A DNA stretch of 63,531 nucleotides, filler included, from Choristocarpus tenellus KU-1152 (taxonomy: Eukaryota; Protista; Phaeophyceae): the NCBI GenBank assembly GCA_964200185.2. It is 6 parts of 6 records of this genome, joined end to end, with 100 filler letters (N's around TTAATTAATTAA, not from the genome) between each part and the next. Parts side by side here need not be neighbours in the genome. Positions count along the whole stretch, not along the records: positions 1 to 26,122 come from CAXNAD020000172.1; 5 more parts are not named here. One strand, written 5' to 3'. Below the pieces are notes generated by a model that worked only from the letters and a program-made list of their open reading frames with translations, was not told the origin of the DNA and did not search any database. Position 1 is the first letter of the stretch, and each line of letters begins with the position of its first letter. Of this stretch, positions 922 to 20,975 are shown piece by piece. A program made the position numbers and the translations under genes.

Positions 922-3900
922 TTATGTTGCTATTCCGTTCTGCATGTACTGGAACATGTCATACTGTTGGGTTGTCCATGAGTTAAAGCTACGGTCCACT
1001 AGAGCAAGAATCTCCTGGTCTGTACGCACGTCCAAGAACCGTTTGCGAAGCAGCTCAAGCTGGACAGTTCAGAATTGCAGCAAATAGAGAGTGGCATGTA
1101 GGCATCACAATCATGTTGAGGGTGGGATCACAGAGGTACTTTGGACACTTACTGCCTTGTGATATTGTGACACTGAATACACATAAAAACAAAGGAATTT
1201 ACCCATTGATTGCAATGGTGGTGAGCATACTGAAGGATAGATACTGTACTGTGTTCTGTGTTGATGCAGACTACTATTTCGAGAAAAATCAAACCAGTAC
1301 TTTCACATGAACATTGTTGAGTGCAAGCTAGCAATGTCAATGCACTCAACGGTTTACAATAATGCAATATGTACTCCCTAGACATCTACAATTTAGCACC
1401 TGTAGTAGTCCCCTCCGGTCGTTTGGAGGTACCATAGCCCAGACAAGGGCCTCGATTTCCTCCAGATGACATTGCACAGCCTTGAAGCCAGCCAAAAACA
1501 ACTCTCGGAACCTATGTCATGACATAAGGAGGTAGATAGGTCTTGAAATGCACTAAAATCTACTTTGAAGTGCACCATACAAGTACACACAACACAATCC
1601 TAACCCTAACCGCAAGTACCCTAACCCATTACATACCTTGCAACAGTAAAATCAAAACATGTTGTCATACAGGAACTTTATCGTGCAGGCATCCTTAATA
1701 TTAACTACAATGCATGCTGATCCGAATAAAGCAAATCAAAGTTCCTTACGAGTGTTCTTAGCAGGACAAATTTTGCATCGCGTAACTTTATTCTATCTGT
1801 CAAAAGGTGGAAGCACAATCGGTTCATTCCTAGAAACCGCCAAAGAATTCATTTTCGTTGTAATCACCGTCACATCTCATACCCATCTGAGCAGACTATG
1901 CTCAACAATAGAACACAAAAAATTCTTACTAATGTTGCAACGCTAGCTCCAAGAAGATACCGTCTTTCTAAAAGGAGCATTTGGTGGTCTAGCACAAAAA
2001 ACGAAAAACTGGAACACCAAAAATGATAAATAATGCTAAAGGGCAATCTCAAAGTTTCCATTCTTCTCTCACAACAGGTAGGGAACAATCAGAATATATG
2101 TCATAAACAGAAGAATTTACTGTCAGTAGGAAGAGATTTACCCAGATTTCCTAGAGGGTTAAGGTATGGTCGCATTTTGGTATCTGCACCCACCAACACA
2201 CCCTGATCACCAAGCTATGAGAGAGGTAAGATACCGTACATACATCTACTCTGAAATAAAGAAAATTCGTCATCTGATGTAATGGTGTGGGGGAGAACAC
2301 ATGAGTGGTACCACATATCTAAGAAACTAGTAATTACCTGTCCCACTTTTCACTCGTTGGTCCTCCCATGATATCAACATACTCCTGGGTCAGCTTGAAA
2401 GGTGCCGTCTCATGCTTCCATATGCCTGCAGGTCGTACAATTGACACATTATCAATAATCACGCACACTACACAAAAACATCCATCCACACACACAGACA
2501 CCACAAGTTTTTTTTTTTTTTACCAGGACAAAATATTTTCATCTAAGCAATTCAAACACGAGGATGTTGCTATTCATGAAACCCAGATATGGAGAGGCCA
2601 CAGTGTCATACTTCTGGAATTCTACTAGTTAAAACTTCGATCCCATTACAATGTCCAAGTGCTTACAAGGTGGAAAATTTCTTAATATCACCATTGCTGT
2701 CATTTTTCCACCCCATGTCAAACAGTGAAATAATTTGAGGTTTGCTGTCCAATTTTTTTAGGATCGGTCCTGATTACCTCCCAATACGATTTTACAAGCA
2801 AATGTTTCCACACAAGAATCTCTTATTTTTGTGGAAGTGGTTCTCTGTGGGACTATCATGATACTGTTGAAAAATGACCTGCACAACAAGCATAACTAAA
2901 AAAAATCAAAATTCCTTGCTATATTAACTCTATTCGTGGAAGGTTCAAGGGCACAGCATTACAATAAGGTTCATGTTAAAAGTGCATCCACAGTAGCATG
3001 TCACCAGATCATGCTCTCTGTGCCTTAGATCTTTGAACAGTATTTGACGTGGTGTCCTTGAACATAACCATTGTTCCCTCCTCTTGCTGTTCATAGATGC
3101 ATGTCACTTGATCGCAGGCATTGAACACAAAATAGATGCAGAATAGAGTTTCTCGATCATTTTGATGCTGCAGGTATTACACAAACCTGCTTCCACACCA
3201 ATTTTGGGACTCCTTCGGCCCCTCTAGGACCCTGGGATACCAACTGGACTTCATCCAATAGCTACAGACTAAATCACGAGAAATCGCTTTCTGTCAGAAC
3301 TATCTTTCCATTGGCAACACTTCTTTGCTGCATGCAGTCTGCAGTTTCTTGATAAAATATAGGTGACGGATGGAAATAAAAGGGTGGGTAATGCAACACG
3401 ATGCACTGTTTTATCCACTTCTTGTTACTCTACTTTAAACACGAGCTTGATCAGCAGCCAGAAAGTTGTGCCACTGTTTGGGTGTTGCCTTGTAGTCTCA
3501 TGTCTTCTAGTTGCAACGGCAATTAACTCTCACTACTCAGGACTGCAGTTAGTTCTATTTAGCACGTTGTGCTTCTGTGGCATTGCATTCTGCTTGCCTG
3601 GGGAGGATCCCAGAATGAATCCAAAGTCGATGTGGATGATGTGTCCTCTCTTGTCGATCATAATGTTACCATTATGCCGGTCCTTCACCTGCTCACACAC
3701 ACACACACACACATTTTCACACCATTTTAAAGTGTCATTGCAAACAGGGAAATAATCCTTGTTGAGAAGTTAACCCTAACCACATGAAAGACCACTGCTG
3801 TGTTTTATCCTCAAGTTACCAAAACATCATTGAGAAAATTTAAACTGAATATCCTCTCAGTACTACTTGCAAAAAACACTCATAAAATTTCAAGGCTGGA

Positions 3901-6900
3901 TGGAAGCGATTAACCAAGAAGTCTACAGCTGCTTGAGCTACTTGAAATGGTAACATTTGGGGAATGTGCACACTTTAAACAAGTTGTCAAAGTATAAGCA
4001 CACTGATTGAGCAGGTGCATTTGGACTCAATGGAACATTGGTGCACTGGTGGTCTTCACATTGGTGATTGCATTGACCCTGCACAATTGAGGAGATTGTG
4101 TACCCGTATATCTTTACGAACCCTAAAAATAACTGCACATCCTGAGAAAAAAACCTCGAGGTCTCTTTACATTAATCTGTAGAGTTAGAGTTAGGGTAGA
4201 GAACTATTGAAACAAAAAACACGTAACAAGAATTGGGTAGATAGAGACCCACTGTGATACCTGCCTAACCCTAGAGTATAGGTATGCAATGGGTCCATTT
4301 TCGCTGGAAACAATTGCTAGAGGGATTATGTATAGGGACAGCCTTCAAGCTATAAAGTTCAATTCCATTGTGTAAGTGATCCTTCAATTCTCAGGGACTG
4401 ATATGCACAACCCATACATACCAAATATGCAACAATTTGGAGCATGTAAGCCTGCAATTGCTAAATTGTATTGGAACTTAGGGTTAGGGCTTGATCGAGT
4501 GTACCCGTTTCAAAAAAGTAAGCAGACACAACAACAACAAATCATACACAAACTAACCCAAACCCTAATCCTAACCCAACATGGAAAAAGAGTCCACCAA
4601 ATCTGTACTTTAAGGACTTAATCTGCAGTCAAATGAGAGTAAATAGTAGGAACAGAGAATCACGAAAGTCATGAAGTCTTGCCTGAAGCATGTAAGTGAT
4701 GATTGAATAGCCTGCCAAGCTGCGGACAAAGTTATCTACTGCCCTTCCAAACAGACCAGCGGTCTTCCCCATGTACAGCTGCTCAAAGAAGTCCTAAACA
4801 TCAGGAATATTGTACAGGCAATTAGAGAAGGTATTGTTAGAACCAGTACTAGCCCGAGAGAGAATCTGATCATTGTAAAGTCCCTGATAGTAACATGTAA
4901 CAAACAAGGATGGAGTCTTCTTAACCGCATCAACAGTAGTGACATGGCAATTGCAGACTTTCACAACAATTTTGTACCATATTCTCTGTTGAGATCACCT
5001 CAAAGCATGTACTCAGAATATCTATGTATTACTCCACCCTGGCACTTCACAAGGAAAAAAAATATGATACTGTCGTCTAACCTGTAACAAGTCACATGGT
5101 GGGGGGGAGGATTGAGTGATAAAGTAGGGCATATGTTATGTGAATGTCACAACAACATCAGATGAAAGCAAAAAGAAAAGGAAGAATGTCAGGTCATAGA
5201 AGTCAAACAACCAAGCTTCACCCTCAAACAATCCTGCAGATATTGAGGAAACGGCAGGCTAGGCTCATTTTACCCTAACCCTAAGACTATGACCAAGCAA
5301 ATAACCTCAAGGAATGGAGTTCATCCGATCTATATTGGAGACTAATGTGAAGTCCTAAAAACAATCGGAGACCTTGGATGCTCACAGCTAGAGTATAACT
5401 CTGAAGCCAATTAGTGCTATGGTTGATGTGATGTCCTGTAGCTCCCACTAGTTTATCTGAGTCAACCCTAACCCTAACTCTTCAAACCAATGGGTCAAGT
5501 TGGATACACAAGGGAAACTCGATGAACTCCTCGCCTTAATGTTGGTGTAACTGTGAGGAGACTTCTTAATATGATCGATGCTCTTCGCATCAGTGATACA
5601 TTCCACCAGACCACACTTGTCTCCACAACACATGATGGAGTATGGTCTCAGTCGAAGGGAGAGACCTTCCTGTTTGAAGATGTGGTCTACTAGACAGATC
5701 ACCTGATGGCAAGGTATAGAATGGGAAACACACAAAAGTATTGCACAAGGTTCACCTCAAATAGGTTAGGGTTAGGGTTAGCAAATGAACAAGAAATACC
5801 AAGTAAAGGCATGGGTGAAGTGCTTGCAGCACCCAAGAGCACTACTAGGGTTAGGGAATGACTCAGTGTGTATGATAGGCAGTTAATGTAAAGTGATGGC
5901 ATTCTACGTTGTGGAGGGTCTGCTGTAGGTGAATGTGCAATAAAAAAGAACAATTTCCAGACAATGTCAAAAAAGCATCAGGCTGGGACAAACTTCTACA
6001 TACTTAAGACTCTCCCCAGACAGAATGTGGGAAAAATATTTTTCCTTGTCTAAGAATTGGAGATGTACCTAGGGTGAGAATATAAATTCTTAGGGTTAGG
6101 GTTGAGTTAAGAGATTGTTGGGTAATCTTCAACCACAAGCAAAACTCATATCGTCGGGCTATATACTCAAGAAACTGAGAGGAGGGTACTGCCGAGTTTG
6201 AAGGACTCTTCTGACACTCTCGTGGCATACGCCTTTGGAGTGCAAACCCCACAGCAGCTGGTAGACTGTGCATTTTGGATGTGTTTGTGAGTGCAATCAG
6301 TTTACATCTTTCAAAGCAAGATATTCTTATTGACGCCCTCCTTTGAATATCTTTGACTTCATTAAATAAAGTCGGAACACCCCCCATCCCTCTCGGCTAG
6401 TTTGACTCTACACCCTGCCAGTATCTCGGGATTACAGACGGACTCAAGAGGTGAGTGTTAAGTGAGGAATGTGTTTGGAGCATCTACAATTCACAAAAGC
6501 ATCAGCCTGTAGTTTTCAAATATGGCATATCACAGAAGTTTGTGGAAGTAACCGATAACACCCCTATAGAAGATTGCATCTTTCAAGTAACCAGTTTACT
6601 AATTATATCCATTCTCCTCAAAAAAGATCACCACAACACATATGCAATCAAGGGCAAGAAATAAGTATCAATACAGACTATTTCTAAACTCGACATGGCA
6701 AGGCTAATGCACCCCATTGGGGGTCACAAAACCCTGAGCTTGGTCTGTGTGGTACAATATTCTACAGATGAGAAATAATTTGTGACAACATCTGTGCTGC
6801 AGAGCTCAAAAACTCCTCTCTAATCCTAACCCTAGCTCTAAGTTGTTGTACCTGAGTGTAATGAACACCACTACCAATGAGAAAGGAGTTGCATGTCACT

Positions 6901-20696: not shown

Positions 20697-20975
20697 CTGA
20701 GACATGTTTCAACACACAATAAGGTGGCATGACCAATATTCATGAGGAAACACATCGGTGTGTTGTAAAACATACCCTAACCCTAACCCTAAAATAGCAT
20801 GAGCAGTGTCACGATATCAGCAGTGACATAATGAGAACCAGGAATGATAATATCAGGAAGAGAAGTCATCTCACAATTGACAAAGAGGTAGTTCACTGTG
20901 TGGATTACAATTCATGAGCTATGGTTTTAGTATGTCCACAGTGTGGAAGGATCCATAGCAAATTTGGTTATGTAC

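Follow-up and report, generated by a model that had tools for sequence, protein, structure and literature searches.

The introns of a phosphatidylinositol 4-kinase gene (PI4K-beta) of Choristocarpus tenellus, an early-branching brown alga, are filled with short perfect copies of the telomere repeat, on average one tract per ~190 bp across 19 kb. Most likely, these tracts are an extreme, lineage-specific form of an already known phenomenon, short interstitial telomeric sequences (ITSs). The explanation we favor, with slightly better than even confidence, is that telomerase, or synthesis on a telomeric template, patched breaks in noncoding DNA, and that local slippage, duplication, and purifying selection subsequently shaped the result.

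Telomeric Tracts in the PI4K-beta Gene

In the window, i.e., the whole stretch of 63,531 nt that was analyzed, we counted 101 perfect TTAGGG/CCCTAA runs of at least 9 nt, 42 with the G-strand and 59 with the C-strand on the plus strand. This bears out the sequence-only reading, which had estimated about 90 short tracts in 19 kb in both orientations: 100 of the runs fall into a single zone (Table 1) with a median spacing of ~90 nt. The 84 runs of at least 12 nt (12–29 nt) span exactly positions 1599–20792, and the mode of tract length is 13–16 nt. Only one 9-mer, at 24468, falls outside; apart from it, the region 20793–26122, which includes the neighboring JmjC_2/cupin-type gene, is tract-free.

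Chance does not account for these numbers. TTAGGG occurs 79 times and CCCTAA 114 times in the window, compared to an expectation of ~13, and simulated sequences yielded 0.02 (Markov order 1) or 0.28 (order 3) telomeric 12-mers versus the 84 observed. The decay spectrum of 12-nt telomeric windows comprises 91 perfect, 24 one-mismatch, and 34 two-mismatch instances, with 0, 2, and 10 for the controls. Start and end phases of the tracts are non-uniform, a pattern confounded by chance extension from flanking bases. An Rfam search of the window revealed no match.

The PI4K-beta gene has its ATG at 22056, its stop codon at ~925 and at least 15 exons. These were searched by homology exon by exon, with the homologues P0004, P0003, and P0009 placed by tblastn; the exon for homologue residues ~118–150 was not located between 17909 and 15221. 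The gene is spliced and expressed, and an RNA run splices the exons surrounding the tracts. None of the 101 tracts overlaps the 15 mapped exons (1,974 bp), where ~10 would be expected under uniform placement. The earlier description of a gene body with intronic tracts and spared exons thus stands, except that the location of the gene on the minus strand had been missed. Introns of 0.3–2.7 kb carry 0–8.9 tracts per kb, with peak density at 7.4–20.5 kb. The bulk maps to introns 2–9 from the 5' end (between 5706 and 20543), the first intron contains one tract and the promoter region none. Plant-type telo-boxes were rejected as an explanation on these grounds, since they are found singly or in pairs in promoters, 5'UTRs, or first introns of particular gene classes.

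Table 1. Features of the PI4K-beta region (positions in the window).
Feature	Position	Strand	Description
Tract-dense zone	1599–20792	.	100 perfect (TTAGGG)n/(CCCTAA)n runs, 9–29 nt, both orientations
PI4K-beta (Pik1-type phosphatidylinositol 4-kinase) coding region	925–22056	-	PF00454 exon matches, PDB PI4KB match, tblastn
RNA-supported exon	10759–10879	-	Sense CCCTAA tracts 16 nt upstream of acceptor and 15 nt downstream of donor
RNA-supported exon, 82 codons, homologue-search query	12717–12962	-	Sense CCCTAA tract 30 nt upstream of acceptor; sense TTAGGG tract 23 nt downstream of donor
RNA-supported exon	13652–13744	-	Sense (CCCTAA)4 tract (13757–13780) ends 12 nt upstream of AG acceptor
RNA-supported exon	15097–15215	-	Spliced contig of run X3
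Minisatellite, 36-nt unit x 7.8	7992–8274	+	Unit: CCCTAA tract (2–4 units) plus 21-nt spacer
56-nt duplication	13116–13232	+	12-nt tract in one copy, 18-nt tract in the other
Nested 59-nt and 26-nt duplications	14604–14816	+	CCCTAA tracts of 15, 15, 21, and 15 nt
Head-to-head junction, (TTAGGG)3 then (CCCTAA)2.5	17727–17758	.	Perfect palindrome centered on GGTTAACC
Tandem array, 49-nt unit x 3.3, 98% matches	18403–18574	+	Unit: TTAGGG tract plus spacer; tracts of 19, 15, 15, and 14 nt
Divergent neighbor, JmjC_2/cupin-type gene	22794–23853	+	Also adjoins PI4K-beta in Chrysoparadoxa

Genome-Wide Abundance and Identity of the Telomere Repeat

Exact matches of plastid proteins identify the organism as C. 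tenellus; a cryptophyte was discarded as a candidate after no phycobilisome gene turned up. The unbiased density sample comprised seven 10-kb nuclear pieces, complemented by pattern counts over the whole genome. The 14-mer TTAGGGTTAGGGTT occurs 14,875 times in balanced orientations (7,353 and 7,522), compared to 19 occurrences of the reversed control and 44 of (TTTAGGG)2. These occurrences represent ~9,900 distinct, strongly clustered loci in 164 Mb, and the total number of tiny telomere-repeat copies in the genome is roughly 10,000–17,000. Along this line, 84 of the 101 perfect period-6 runs of at least 12 nt in the window are telomeric, while the other 17 are spread over 15 motif classes. 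The excess is therefore specific to this hexamer. In this the tracts depart from an ordinary hexanucleotide microsatellite grown by slippage, which would favor no motif above others of similar composition.

The distribution is very patchy. The PI4K-beta-bearing contig contains 62 14-mers, a density ~26 times the genome mean; 11 of the contigs C2–C30 contain none, C30 contains at least 25, and lone single tracts occur on many contigs. Contigs devoid of the 14-mer beside such dense ones are unlike the plain prediction that every break is patched, and the routine break repair suggested by the sequence-only reading is too simple an idea if taken as uniform.

TTAGGG is the terminal repeat of this genome, in line with the earlier assumption. 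Contig C274 begins with (TAACCC)22 in end-of-chromosome orientation, (CCCTAA)n arrays are terminal on C274 and C713 in telomere orientation, and Ectocarpus telomeres consist of (TTAGGG)n (PMC11541908). The gene for telomerase reverse transcriptase (TERT) is present, with Telomerase_RBD exon matches on C1404 (33.7 and 24.9 bits). Both PIF1 and Ku were found, which led us to reject the loss of either gene as cause: the excess has no evident explanation in a missing telomerase restrainer or in defective end joining.

Secondary Duplication and Possible Local Spread

Part of the tract density is due to secondary tandem duplication of tract-plus-spacer units, a contribution overlooked by the sequence-only reading. 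Five local tandem duplications contain a tract inside the unit, with unit numbers differing between copies, and neighbors spaced 21–60 nt apart share the same orientation in 19 cases and have opposite orientation in 7. Like microsatellites, duplicated copies differ by whole units (12/18 nt, a one-unit change after duplication; 15/21 nt; and 12–26 nt across the copies of the 36-nt minisatellite). Slippage is thus active, and part of the tract length and number has arisen independently of telomerase. The palindromic head-to-head junction looks as one would predict for a break extended at either end before joining, but may be a chance neighborhood.

An alternative is spread in cis without ongoing telomerase action. 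A few founder tracts could multiply locally and thereby create hot domains, either through replication slippage or unequal exchange, or through templated insertions of the polymerase-theta type that copy a neighbor. Theta-mediated end joining makes templated insertions of sizes comparable to the 12–29 nt of our tracts, and the density of the PI4K-beta contig next to many large contigs without tracts, the five duplications and the excess of same-orientation neighbors fit such a spread in cis. However, inverted local copies of non-telomeric sequence are not in excess (4 versus 3.4 expected), which argues against generic templated copying, yet telomeric tracts are nearly equal in both orientations. 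Here, we rely on the inverted repeats, as the local direct-repeat count was dominated by imperfect minisatellites. Moreover, isolated tracts exist on many contigs, the majority of tracts reside in unique, non-duplicated flanks, and a trans source would still be required for the founders. As the full explanation, spread in cis is unlikely, although it ranks first among the alternatives.

Orientation near Splice Sites

Tracts in the vicinity of PI4K-beta splice sites follow an orientation rule, to which 10 of 11 tracts within 60 nt conform (permutation P = 0.005). Upstream of acceptors, the sense strand reads CCCTAA in all six cases; downstream of donors, it reads TTAGGG in four of five, the single exception being the donor-side tract of exon 10759–10879. 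At exon 15097–15215, a sense CCCTAA tract (15231–15244) stops 15 nt before the acceptor, and the donor reads CAG/GTCAGGGTTAGGG..., where the G-strand tract 15065–15093 begins at intron position +4. The rule is observed in this single gene. Genome-wide, tracts are 1.4–1.7 times more common downstream than upstream of AGGTRAG donor-like motifs, but mirrored controls show a composition effect of similar size, and these counts support only that tracts are intronic, not exonic. The preference for G over C is nearly equal on both sides (2.3-fold downstream, 1.9-fold upstream) and thus lends the rule no independent genome-wide support.

Could the tracts be selected functional elements, whose number reflects selection rather than mutation pressure? 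They could act as splicing signals (a CTAAC branch point with pyrimidine tract; UAGGG/G-run enhancer or hnRNP-type sites) or as chromatin-setting sites for a Myb/TRF-like protein. The orientation rule, the tract that supplies positions +4 onward of a used donor and the scarcity of decayed relative to perfect tracts would be in agreement with this, as would the intron enrichment of ITSs in C. elegans and their link to silencing marks (PMC6800518). However, three relatives splice orthologous introns of similar length without any tract, and tracts are missing from most large contigs and from the neighboring gene. Roughly 90 of the 101 tracts are found far inside introns in either orientation, the enrichment close to PI4K-beta exons is not significant (11 versus 7.6 expected, P = 0.13), and the genome-wide donor counts reveal no clear orientation effect beyond composition. 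We therefore regard selection for function as an improbable cause of the tract number.

Flanking Sequences, Relatives, and Reads

The DNA between tracts is unique in the genome; a paralogue search with the 19-kb zone returned telomeric matches only. Direct repeats abutting the tracts, i.e., potential target-site duplications (TSDs), stay at the level of random controls, and among 158 tracts neither a common flank k-mer nor a recurrent non-telomeric flank was identified. A very short mobile element (MITE, SINE, or a retroposon with telomeric tail) would explain high copy number and both orientations, and some inverted tract pairs do enclose 12–16 nt (7003–7054, 13881–13926). Close inverted pairs are, however, about as numerous as tract density predicts, and unique flanks, missing TSDs, and the lack of a shared motif render such an element very improbable.

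The PI4K-beta orthologues in L029, Laminaria digitata, and Chrysoparadoxa share the exon structure and contain no tracts of at least 12 nt; the excess is thus lineage-specific. Orthologous introns are too diverged, and the alignment with these three relatives is confined to exons. Neither this exon-only comparison, nor the reads of three runs, nor the paralogue search of the 19-kb zone yielded an empty site. The reads of the three runs revealed no insertion polymorphism either, and no telomerase-RNA co-insert was obtained. Many 'joints' seen in reads were cross-matches between tracts at different loci.

The tracts reappear in Logan contigs of two DNA runs without any difference to the assembly; one of them (4,781 nt, depth 17.6) covers positions 10500–12983. 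Runs and assembly stem from the same study, so this agreement excludes an assembler or polishing artefact without providing an independent sample. The published assembly is long-read based and fragmented into 27,310 contigs, but an assembly, polishing, or contamination artefact is a negligible explanation, since k=31 read contigs from both runs cross the short tracts into unique flanks at normal depth with zero differences, the RNA run splices exons on either side of tracts, and the exons and the JmjC-PI4K gene neighborhood agree with ochrophyte relatives.

A Proposed Model of Telomerase Patching

Our analysis establishes the existence of the tracts, their motif specificity, their lineage restriction, exon avoidance, the lack of TSDs and of shared flanks, secondary duplication and, for PI4K-beta, the orientation rule. 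As in short ITSs, the terminal repeat of the species itself occurs internally, in few units, with unique non-subtelomeric flanks and no TSD. We propose that a trans-acting template carrying the telomere hexamer of the species, with telomerase as the likeliest candidate, would add 2–5 repeats to the 3' end of broken or nicked noncoding DNA. End joining would then seal the break and leave a patch in either orientation, without target-site duplication. Existing tracts would raise the local rate of new events, giving rise to hot domains such as PI4K-beta, where same-orientation neighbors could slip or recombine into tract-plus-spacer minisatellites of drifting unit number. Selection would purge tracts landing in exons, and beside splice sites only the splicing-compatible orientation would persist: sense CCCTAA, pyrimidine-rich and holding a branch-point-like CTAAC, upstream of acceptors, and sense TTAGGG, a source of G-runs, downstream of donors.

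Break patching by telomerase had already been suggested in the sequence-only reading. Specificity, the presence of TERT, lineage restriction, and the unlikelihood of a transposon speak for it; a picture of uniform repair is too simple. As no empty sites were found, we infer the mechanism, and telomerase is not demonstrated as the enzyme; breaks as substrate, the in-register seeding described in that reading, positive feedback, and the role of selection are likewise deduced. A bolder version is conceivable but doubtful: telomerase may be a frequent repair route for breaks and nicks in transcribed noncoding DNA of Choristocarpus (or the Discosporangiales), with more than 10,000 micro-patches fixed, patches attracting more patches until gene bodies are saturated, and exon-adjacent patches co-opted as splice signals (a CTAAC branch point; G-runs at or after the donor).

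Evidence for telomerase action at internal breaks in normal germlines has so far come from a few hundred scars of considerable age in mammals. C. tenellus can be cultured, and its genome, with ~10,000 or more patches that are mostly perfect and seemingly recent, in some genes one every 200 bp, would offer thousands of junctions for analysis. The alga could serve as an experimental system to measure the frequency and the sites of competition between telomerase and end joining, and to learn whether interstitial tracts seed further breakage. In addition, the tracts form a natural experiment on the tolerance or use of inserted branch-point-like and G-run motifs by introns, and they pose a practical problem for assembly and annotation of the C. 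tenellus genome.

Comparison with Known Systems

In mammals (primates, rodents, horse), insertion of short ITSs at double-strand breaks was shown by empty-site comparison, and telomerase is implicated (PMC7215372). The C. tenellus tracts resemble them in the exact telomere hexamer, few units, internal position, unique flanks, complete absence from exons, and frequent location in introns, and they appear to behave as insertions rather than gradually grown microsatellites. Compared to the mammalian ITSs, they are shorter (mostly 2–3 units), cluster strongly, and in many cases have been duplicated secondarily. The human genome contains 229 ITS loci of at least 4 repeats in ~3 Gb (PMC7215372), compared to ~9,900 14-mer loci in the 164 Mb of C. 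tenellus. The mammalian mechanism is defined by empty-site, microhomology, and TERC-ITS evidence; its operation in C. tenellus is a proposal.

C. elegans carries (TTAGGC)n ITSs at ~1,260 sites per 100 Mb, 63% of them intronic and almost none exonic, with a median identity of 84% (PMC6800518). Both species have more than 1,000 sites, an intron-rich and exon-poor distribution, and a spectrum from perfect to degenerate copies. In contrast to the mostly degenerate nematode sites, those of C. tenellus are mostly perfect, ~5–8 times denser genome-wide, and locally reach ~4,400 per Mb.

The haptophyte Calcidiscus leptoporus, a member of another phylum, has TTAGGG telomeres and frequent ITSs throughout an intron-rich genome, which hampered its assembly; these are reported descriptively, without analysis of length, introns, orientation, or mechanism (PMC13518057). 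Among brown algae, a subtelomeric 98-bp satellite of Ectocarpus contains three embedded TTAGGG motifs, discussed as possible seeds for telomere healing (PMC11541908). With telomere motifs in a tandem unit, it resembles our 36-nt and 49-nt tract-plus-spacer arrays. However, the Ectocarpus satellite is subtelomeric and built from one conserved monomer, while the C. tenellus arrays are located in introns of a housekeeping gene, each with its own unique spacer.

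Telomeric Tracts in the Introns of a PI4K-Beta Gene

Contig C172 of the window contains 79 TTAGGG and 114 CCCTAA hexamers against approximately 13 expected. Maximal perfect telomeric runs of at least 9 nt number 101, with 42 G-strand (TTAGGG) and 59 C-strand (CCCTAA) runs on the plus strand, and 84 of the 101 are 12-29 nt long. The sequence-only reading had described tracts of both orientations spread over 1598-20792, and this description holds: runs of at least 12 nt cover precisely 1599-20792, beyond which a lone 9-mer at 24468 is the sole run. Tracts are spaced at a median of approximately 90 nt and a mean of approximately 210 nt. 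Markov simulations yield 0.02 (order 1) and 0.28 (order 3) telomeric 12-mers compared with 84 observed. Perfect period-6 runs of at least 12 nt on this contig comprise the 84 telomeric ones and 17 others, the latter spread over 15 motif classes.

An assembler or polishing artefact is ruled out, since two DNA sequencing runs, which stem from the same study as the assembly and are not an independent sample, yield contigs of ordinary depth that are identical to the window over the short tracts (e.g., a contig of 4,781 nt covering 10500-12983). The tracts are real.

Contig C172, which carries the tracts, belongs to a 164-Mb genome of 27,310 contigs, the Phaeoexplorer genome of Choristocarpus tenellus, an early-branching brown alga. 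The tract zone is made up of the introns of a minus-strand PI4K-beta gene of the Pik1 type. Four of its exons match PF00454, and one matches solved human PI4KB structures. Exon 12717-12962 was searched alone against a representative protein library, and the best full-length homologue, P0004 from Chrysoparadoxa australica (726 aa), was mapped onto the DNA by tblastn. This revealed 15 exons, mapped individually rather than as a joined spliced model, from an ATG at 22056 to a stop near 925, with GT-AG splice sites; the exon for homologue residues ~118-150 was not located by tblastn between 17909 and 15221. On the minus strand, a 2,530-nt contig of sequencing run X3 joins 15215-15108, 13745-13651, 12962-12717, and 10882-10759. 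It represents a spliced mRNA, and thus the gene is expressed and its introns are removed; judging from this contig, X3 is presumably an RNA run.

Not a single one of the 101 tracts overlaps the 1,974 bp of mapped exon, where approximately 10 would be expected, in good agreement with the initial claim that exons are spared. Tracts occur in 12 of the 14 introns, reaching up to 8.9 per kb mid-gene and becoming sparser toward either end, and 20793-26122 is essentially tract-free. A JmjC_2/cupin gene on the plus strand is divergent from PI4K-beta; the two also adjoin in Chrysoparadoxa (L032:178-7604), there in tandem. Far inside the 2.5-kb intron 18017-20543, a consensus donor-like AGGTGAG lies at 18797-18803 (minus strand) with a tract on either side; it may point to recursive splicing or to an exon of cryptic or alternative use.

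Genome-Wide Distribution and Relation to the Telomere

The 14-mer TTAGGGTTAGGGTT occurs 7,353 and 7,522 times on the two strands of the genome, compared with 8 and 11 matches for a reversed control, while the near-cognate (TTTAGGG)2 has 44 matches. The excess thus concerns the species' own telomere unit specifically and is strand-symmetric. Subtracting the matches of a telomeric 20-mer (4,934) from the 14-mer count gives approximately 9,900 distinct 14-mer loci, i.e., about 60 per Mb. Scaled by the ratio on C172 (84 tracts to 49 14-mer loci), this suggests, by extrapolation, roughly 17,000 tracts of at least 12 nt genome-wide, or roughly 100 per Mb. Their distribution is very patchy: eleven contigs among C2-C30 lack the 14-mer, while C30 contains at least 25, C22 14, and C4 13, and C37, C67, C72, and C73 are further dense contigs. 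C172 has 62 matches, or 2,370 per Mb against a genome mean of 91 per Mb, with a local peak of approximately 4,400 tracts per Mb over the whole gene body.

That TTAGGG is also the terminal repeat, as the sequence-only reading presupposed, is confirmed by (TAACCC)22 in chromosome-end orientation at the start of contig C274 and is in accordance with the (TTAGGG)n telomeres of Ectocarpus (PMC11541908). Contig C713 starts with similar arrays including variant units; its subtelomere-like region C713:1-310 (L010) mixes CCCTAA with CCCTCA, CCCTGA, and CCCAAA and contains the insert TCGTACTAA three times, ~90-160 nt apart. C1365:1-153 (L011) opens with 49 nt of G-strand repeat, the opposite orientation to that expected of a left chromosome end, and another G-strand tract comes 86 nt further on; this is probably not a telomere but a long internal array where the assembly broke off.

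A gene with a TERT RNA-binding domain is located on C1404. Both PIF1 and Ku are present in the genome, so simple loss of either gene does not explain the tract excess. Contig C1 is a red-lineage plastid genome (120 kb, 23-27% GC) carrying dnaB, rpl1, psbB, ftsH, and ilvB; its dnaB (L019:1-1761) holds an intein splicing domain (PF14890) within DnaB_C. The proteins encoded on C1 are identical to NCBI entries for Choristocarpus tenellus.

Restriction to the Lineage

Orthologous PI4K-beta loci were compared from a Logan assembly of a relative (L029, 15.8 kb), Laminaria digitata (L031, 8 kb), and Chrysoparadoxa australica (L032, 17.6 kb). The exon structure is common to all three. None of these loci contains a tract of at least 12 nt, and telomeric hexamers are below expectation; distant relatives thus lack tracts at the orthologous locus. 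Alignment between species is limited to exons, and hence a site-by-site comparison with empty sites is not possible.

Nature of the Insertions and Secondary Amplification

Inter-tract DNA occurs nowhere else in the genome. Direct repeats that abut tracts do not differ in length distribution from those at random positions, so target-site duplications are absent, and the only k-mers common to the flanks of 158 tracts, taken from C172 and other contigs, are telomere-like. Bases past the tract ends match the periodic continuation at 0.31-0.44, only slightly more often than the background of ~0.27; the junctions are therefore mostly clean, with a smaller share decayed or interrupted. Windows of 12 nt comprise 91 perfect, 24 one-mismatch, and 34 two-mismatch telomeric matches (controls: 0, 2, and 10). 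The majority of tracts are thus either young or maintained without decay, alongside an older fraction that has decayed. Short inverted local copies of non-telomeric sequence are not in excess (4 against 3.4 expected), which argues against a generic templated-copying process.

Five local tandem duplications enclose a tract within their unit (see table), with copies varying by whole hexamer units, and neighbors at 21-60 nt share their orientation in 19 cases versus 7 opposite ones. Both observations indicate that slippage and unequal exchange act after tracts arise and inflate the local count. Tract-free minisatellites occur as well, and the PI4K-beta introns are generally prone to tandem duplication. 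On another contig, C8066:4859-5021 consists of a ~40-nt tandem unit of AGGTAAGAG, telomeric tract, and spacer in at least 3-4 copies, the same tract-plus-spacer minisatellite form as arrays in the window.

Tandem duplications and minisatellites on contig C172
Feature	Position	Unit and copies	Remark
Tandem duplication	7992-8274		tract in unit
Tandem duplication	13116-13232		tract in unit
Two nested tandem duplications	14604-14816		tract in unit
Tandem duplication	18403-18574		tract in unit
Minisatellite	16802-17212	28 nt x 14.7	tract-free
Minisatellite	18004-18190	24 nt x 8	tract-free
Minisatellite	19957-20290	30 nt x 11	tract-free
Minisatellite	25820-26122	51 nt x 6	tract-free; at contig end, contig stops inside

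Orientation beside Splice Sites

In gene sense, each of the six tracts lying up to 60 nt upstream of an acceptor reads (CCCTAA)n, a pyrimidine-rich sequence that holds a branch-point-like CTAAC. Of the five lying up to 60 nt downstream of a donor, four read (TTAGGG)n; one used donor is CAG|GTCAGGGTTAGGG. This orientation rule covers 10 of 11 splice-proximal tracts in one gene (permutation P = 0.005, binomial P = 0.012), while their number is not significantly raised (11 vs. 7.6 expected, P = 0.13). Genome-wide, the donor-like motif AGGTRAG is followed by a G-tract in 137 matches and by a C-tract in 59, and preceded by them in 81 and 42, respectively. Both orientations are thus 1.4-1.7 times more common downstream, which fits intronic tracts depleted from exons. 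As G-tracts exceed C-tracts on both sides, this bias is largely compositional, and the evidence for the rule comes from the PI4K-beta gene. In our reading, the rule reflects a selective filter, perhaps with co-option, rather than how the tracts arose.

Proposed Mechanism

Five steps, from break extension to splice filter, make up the best-supported account. Where non-coding DNA is broken or nicked, a 3' end would gain a few telomeric repeats; telomerase would be the simplest source, since the added sequence consists of the species' telomere unit and nothing else. The extended end would then be joined to the other end. Within introns such patches would be neutral, and those in exons would disappear. 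Existing patches may favor new events and duplicate locally, giving rise to hot domains, and beside splice sites only a harmless or useful orientation would persist. Unit specificity, insertion-like flanks, lineage restriction, secondary duplication, the avoidance of exons, and the orientation rule in this gene are observations; the enzyme, the break as substrate, and the feedback we infer. The telomerase-mediated patching of intronic breaks put forward by the sequence-only reading is plausible and has support in part, although its mechanism is unproven.

Comparison with Known Interstitial Telomeric Sequences

The tracts are short interstitial telomeric sequences (ITSs), a known kind of element. 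The Phaeoexplorer genome paper makes no mention of interstitial telomeric repeats, and we found no such report in the literature for Choristocarpus or other brown algae. ITSs have been described as pervasive in the haptophyte Calcidiscus leptoporus (PMC13518057). Mammalian short ITSs were inserted at breaks, as empty-site comparison revealed, and telomerase is implicated (PMC7215372). The human genome contains 229 ITS loci of four or more repeats, none of them in exons (PMC7215372), compared with approximately 60 14-mer loci per Mb in Choristocarpus. C. elegans possesses ~1,260 ITSs, 63% of which are in introns (PMC6800518); these are mostly degenerate, whereas most Choristocarpus tracts are perfect and comprise 2-3 units. 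What is new in Choristocarpus is thus the scale and form of ITSs in a brown alga.
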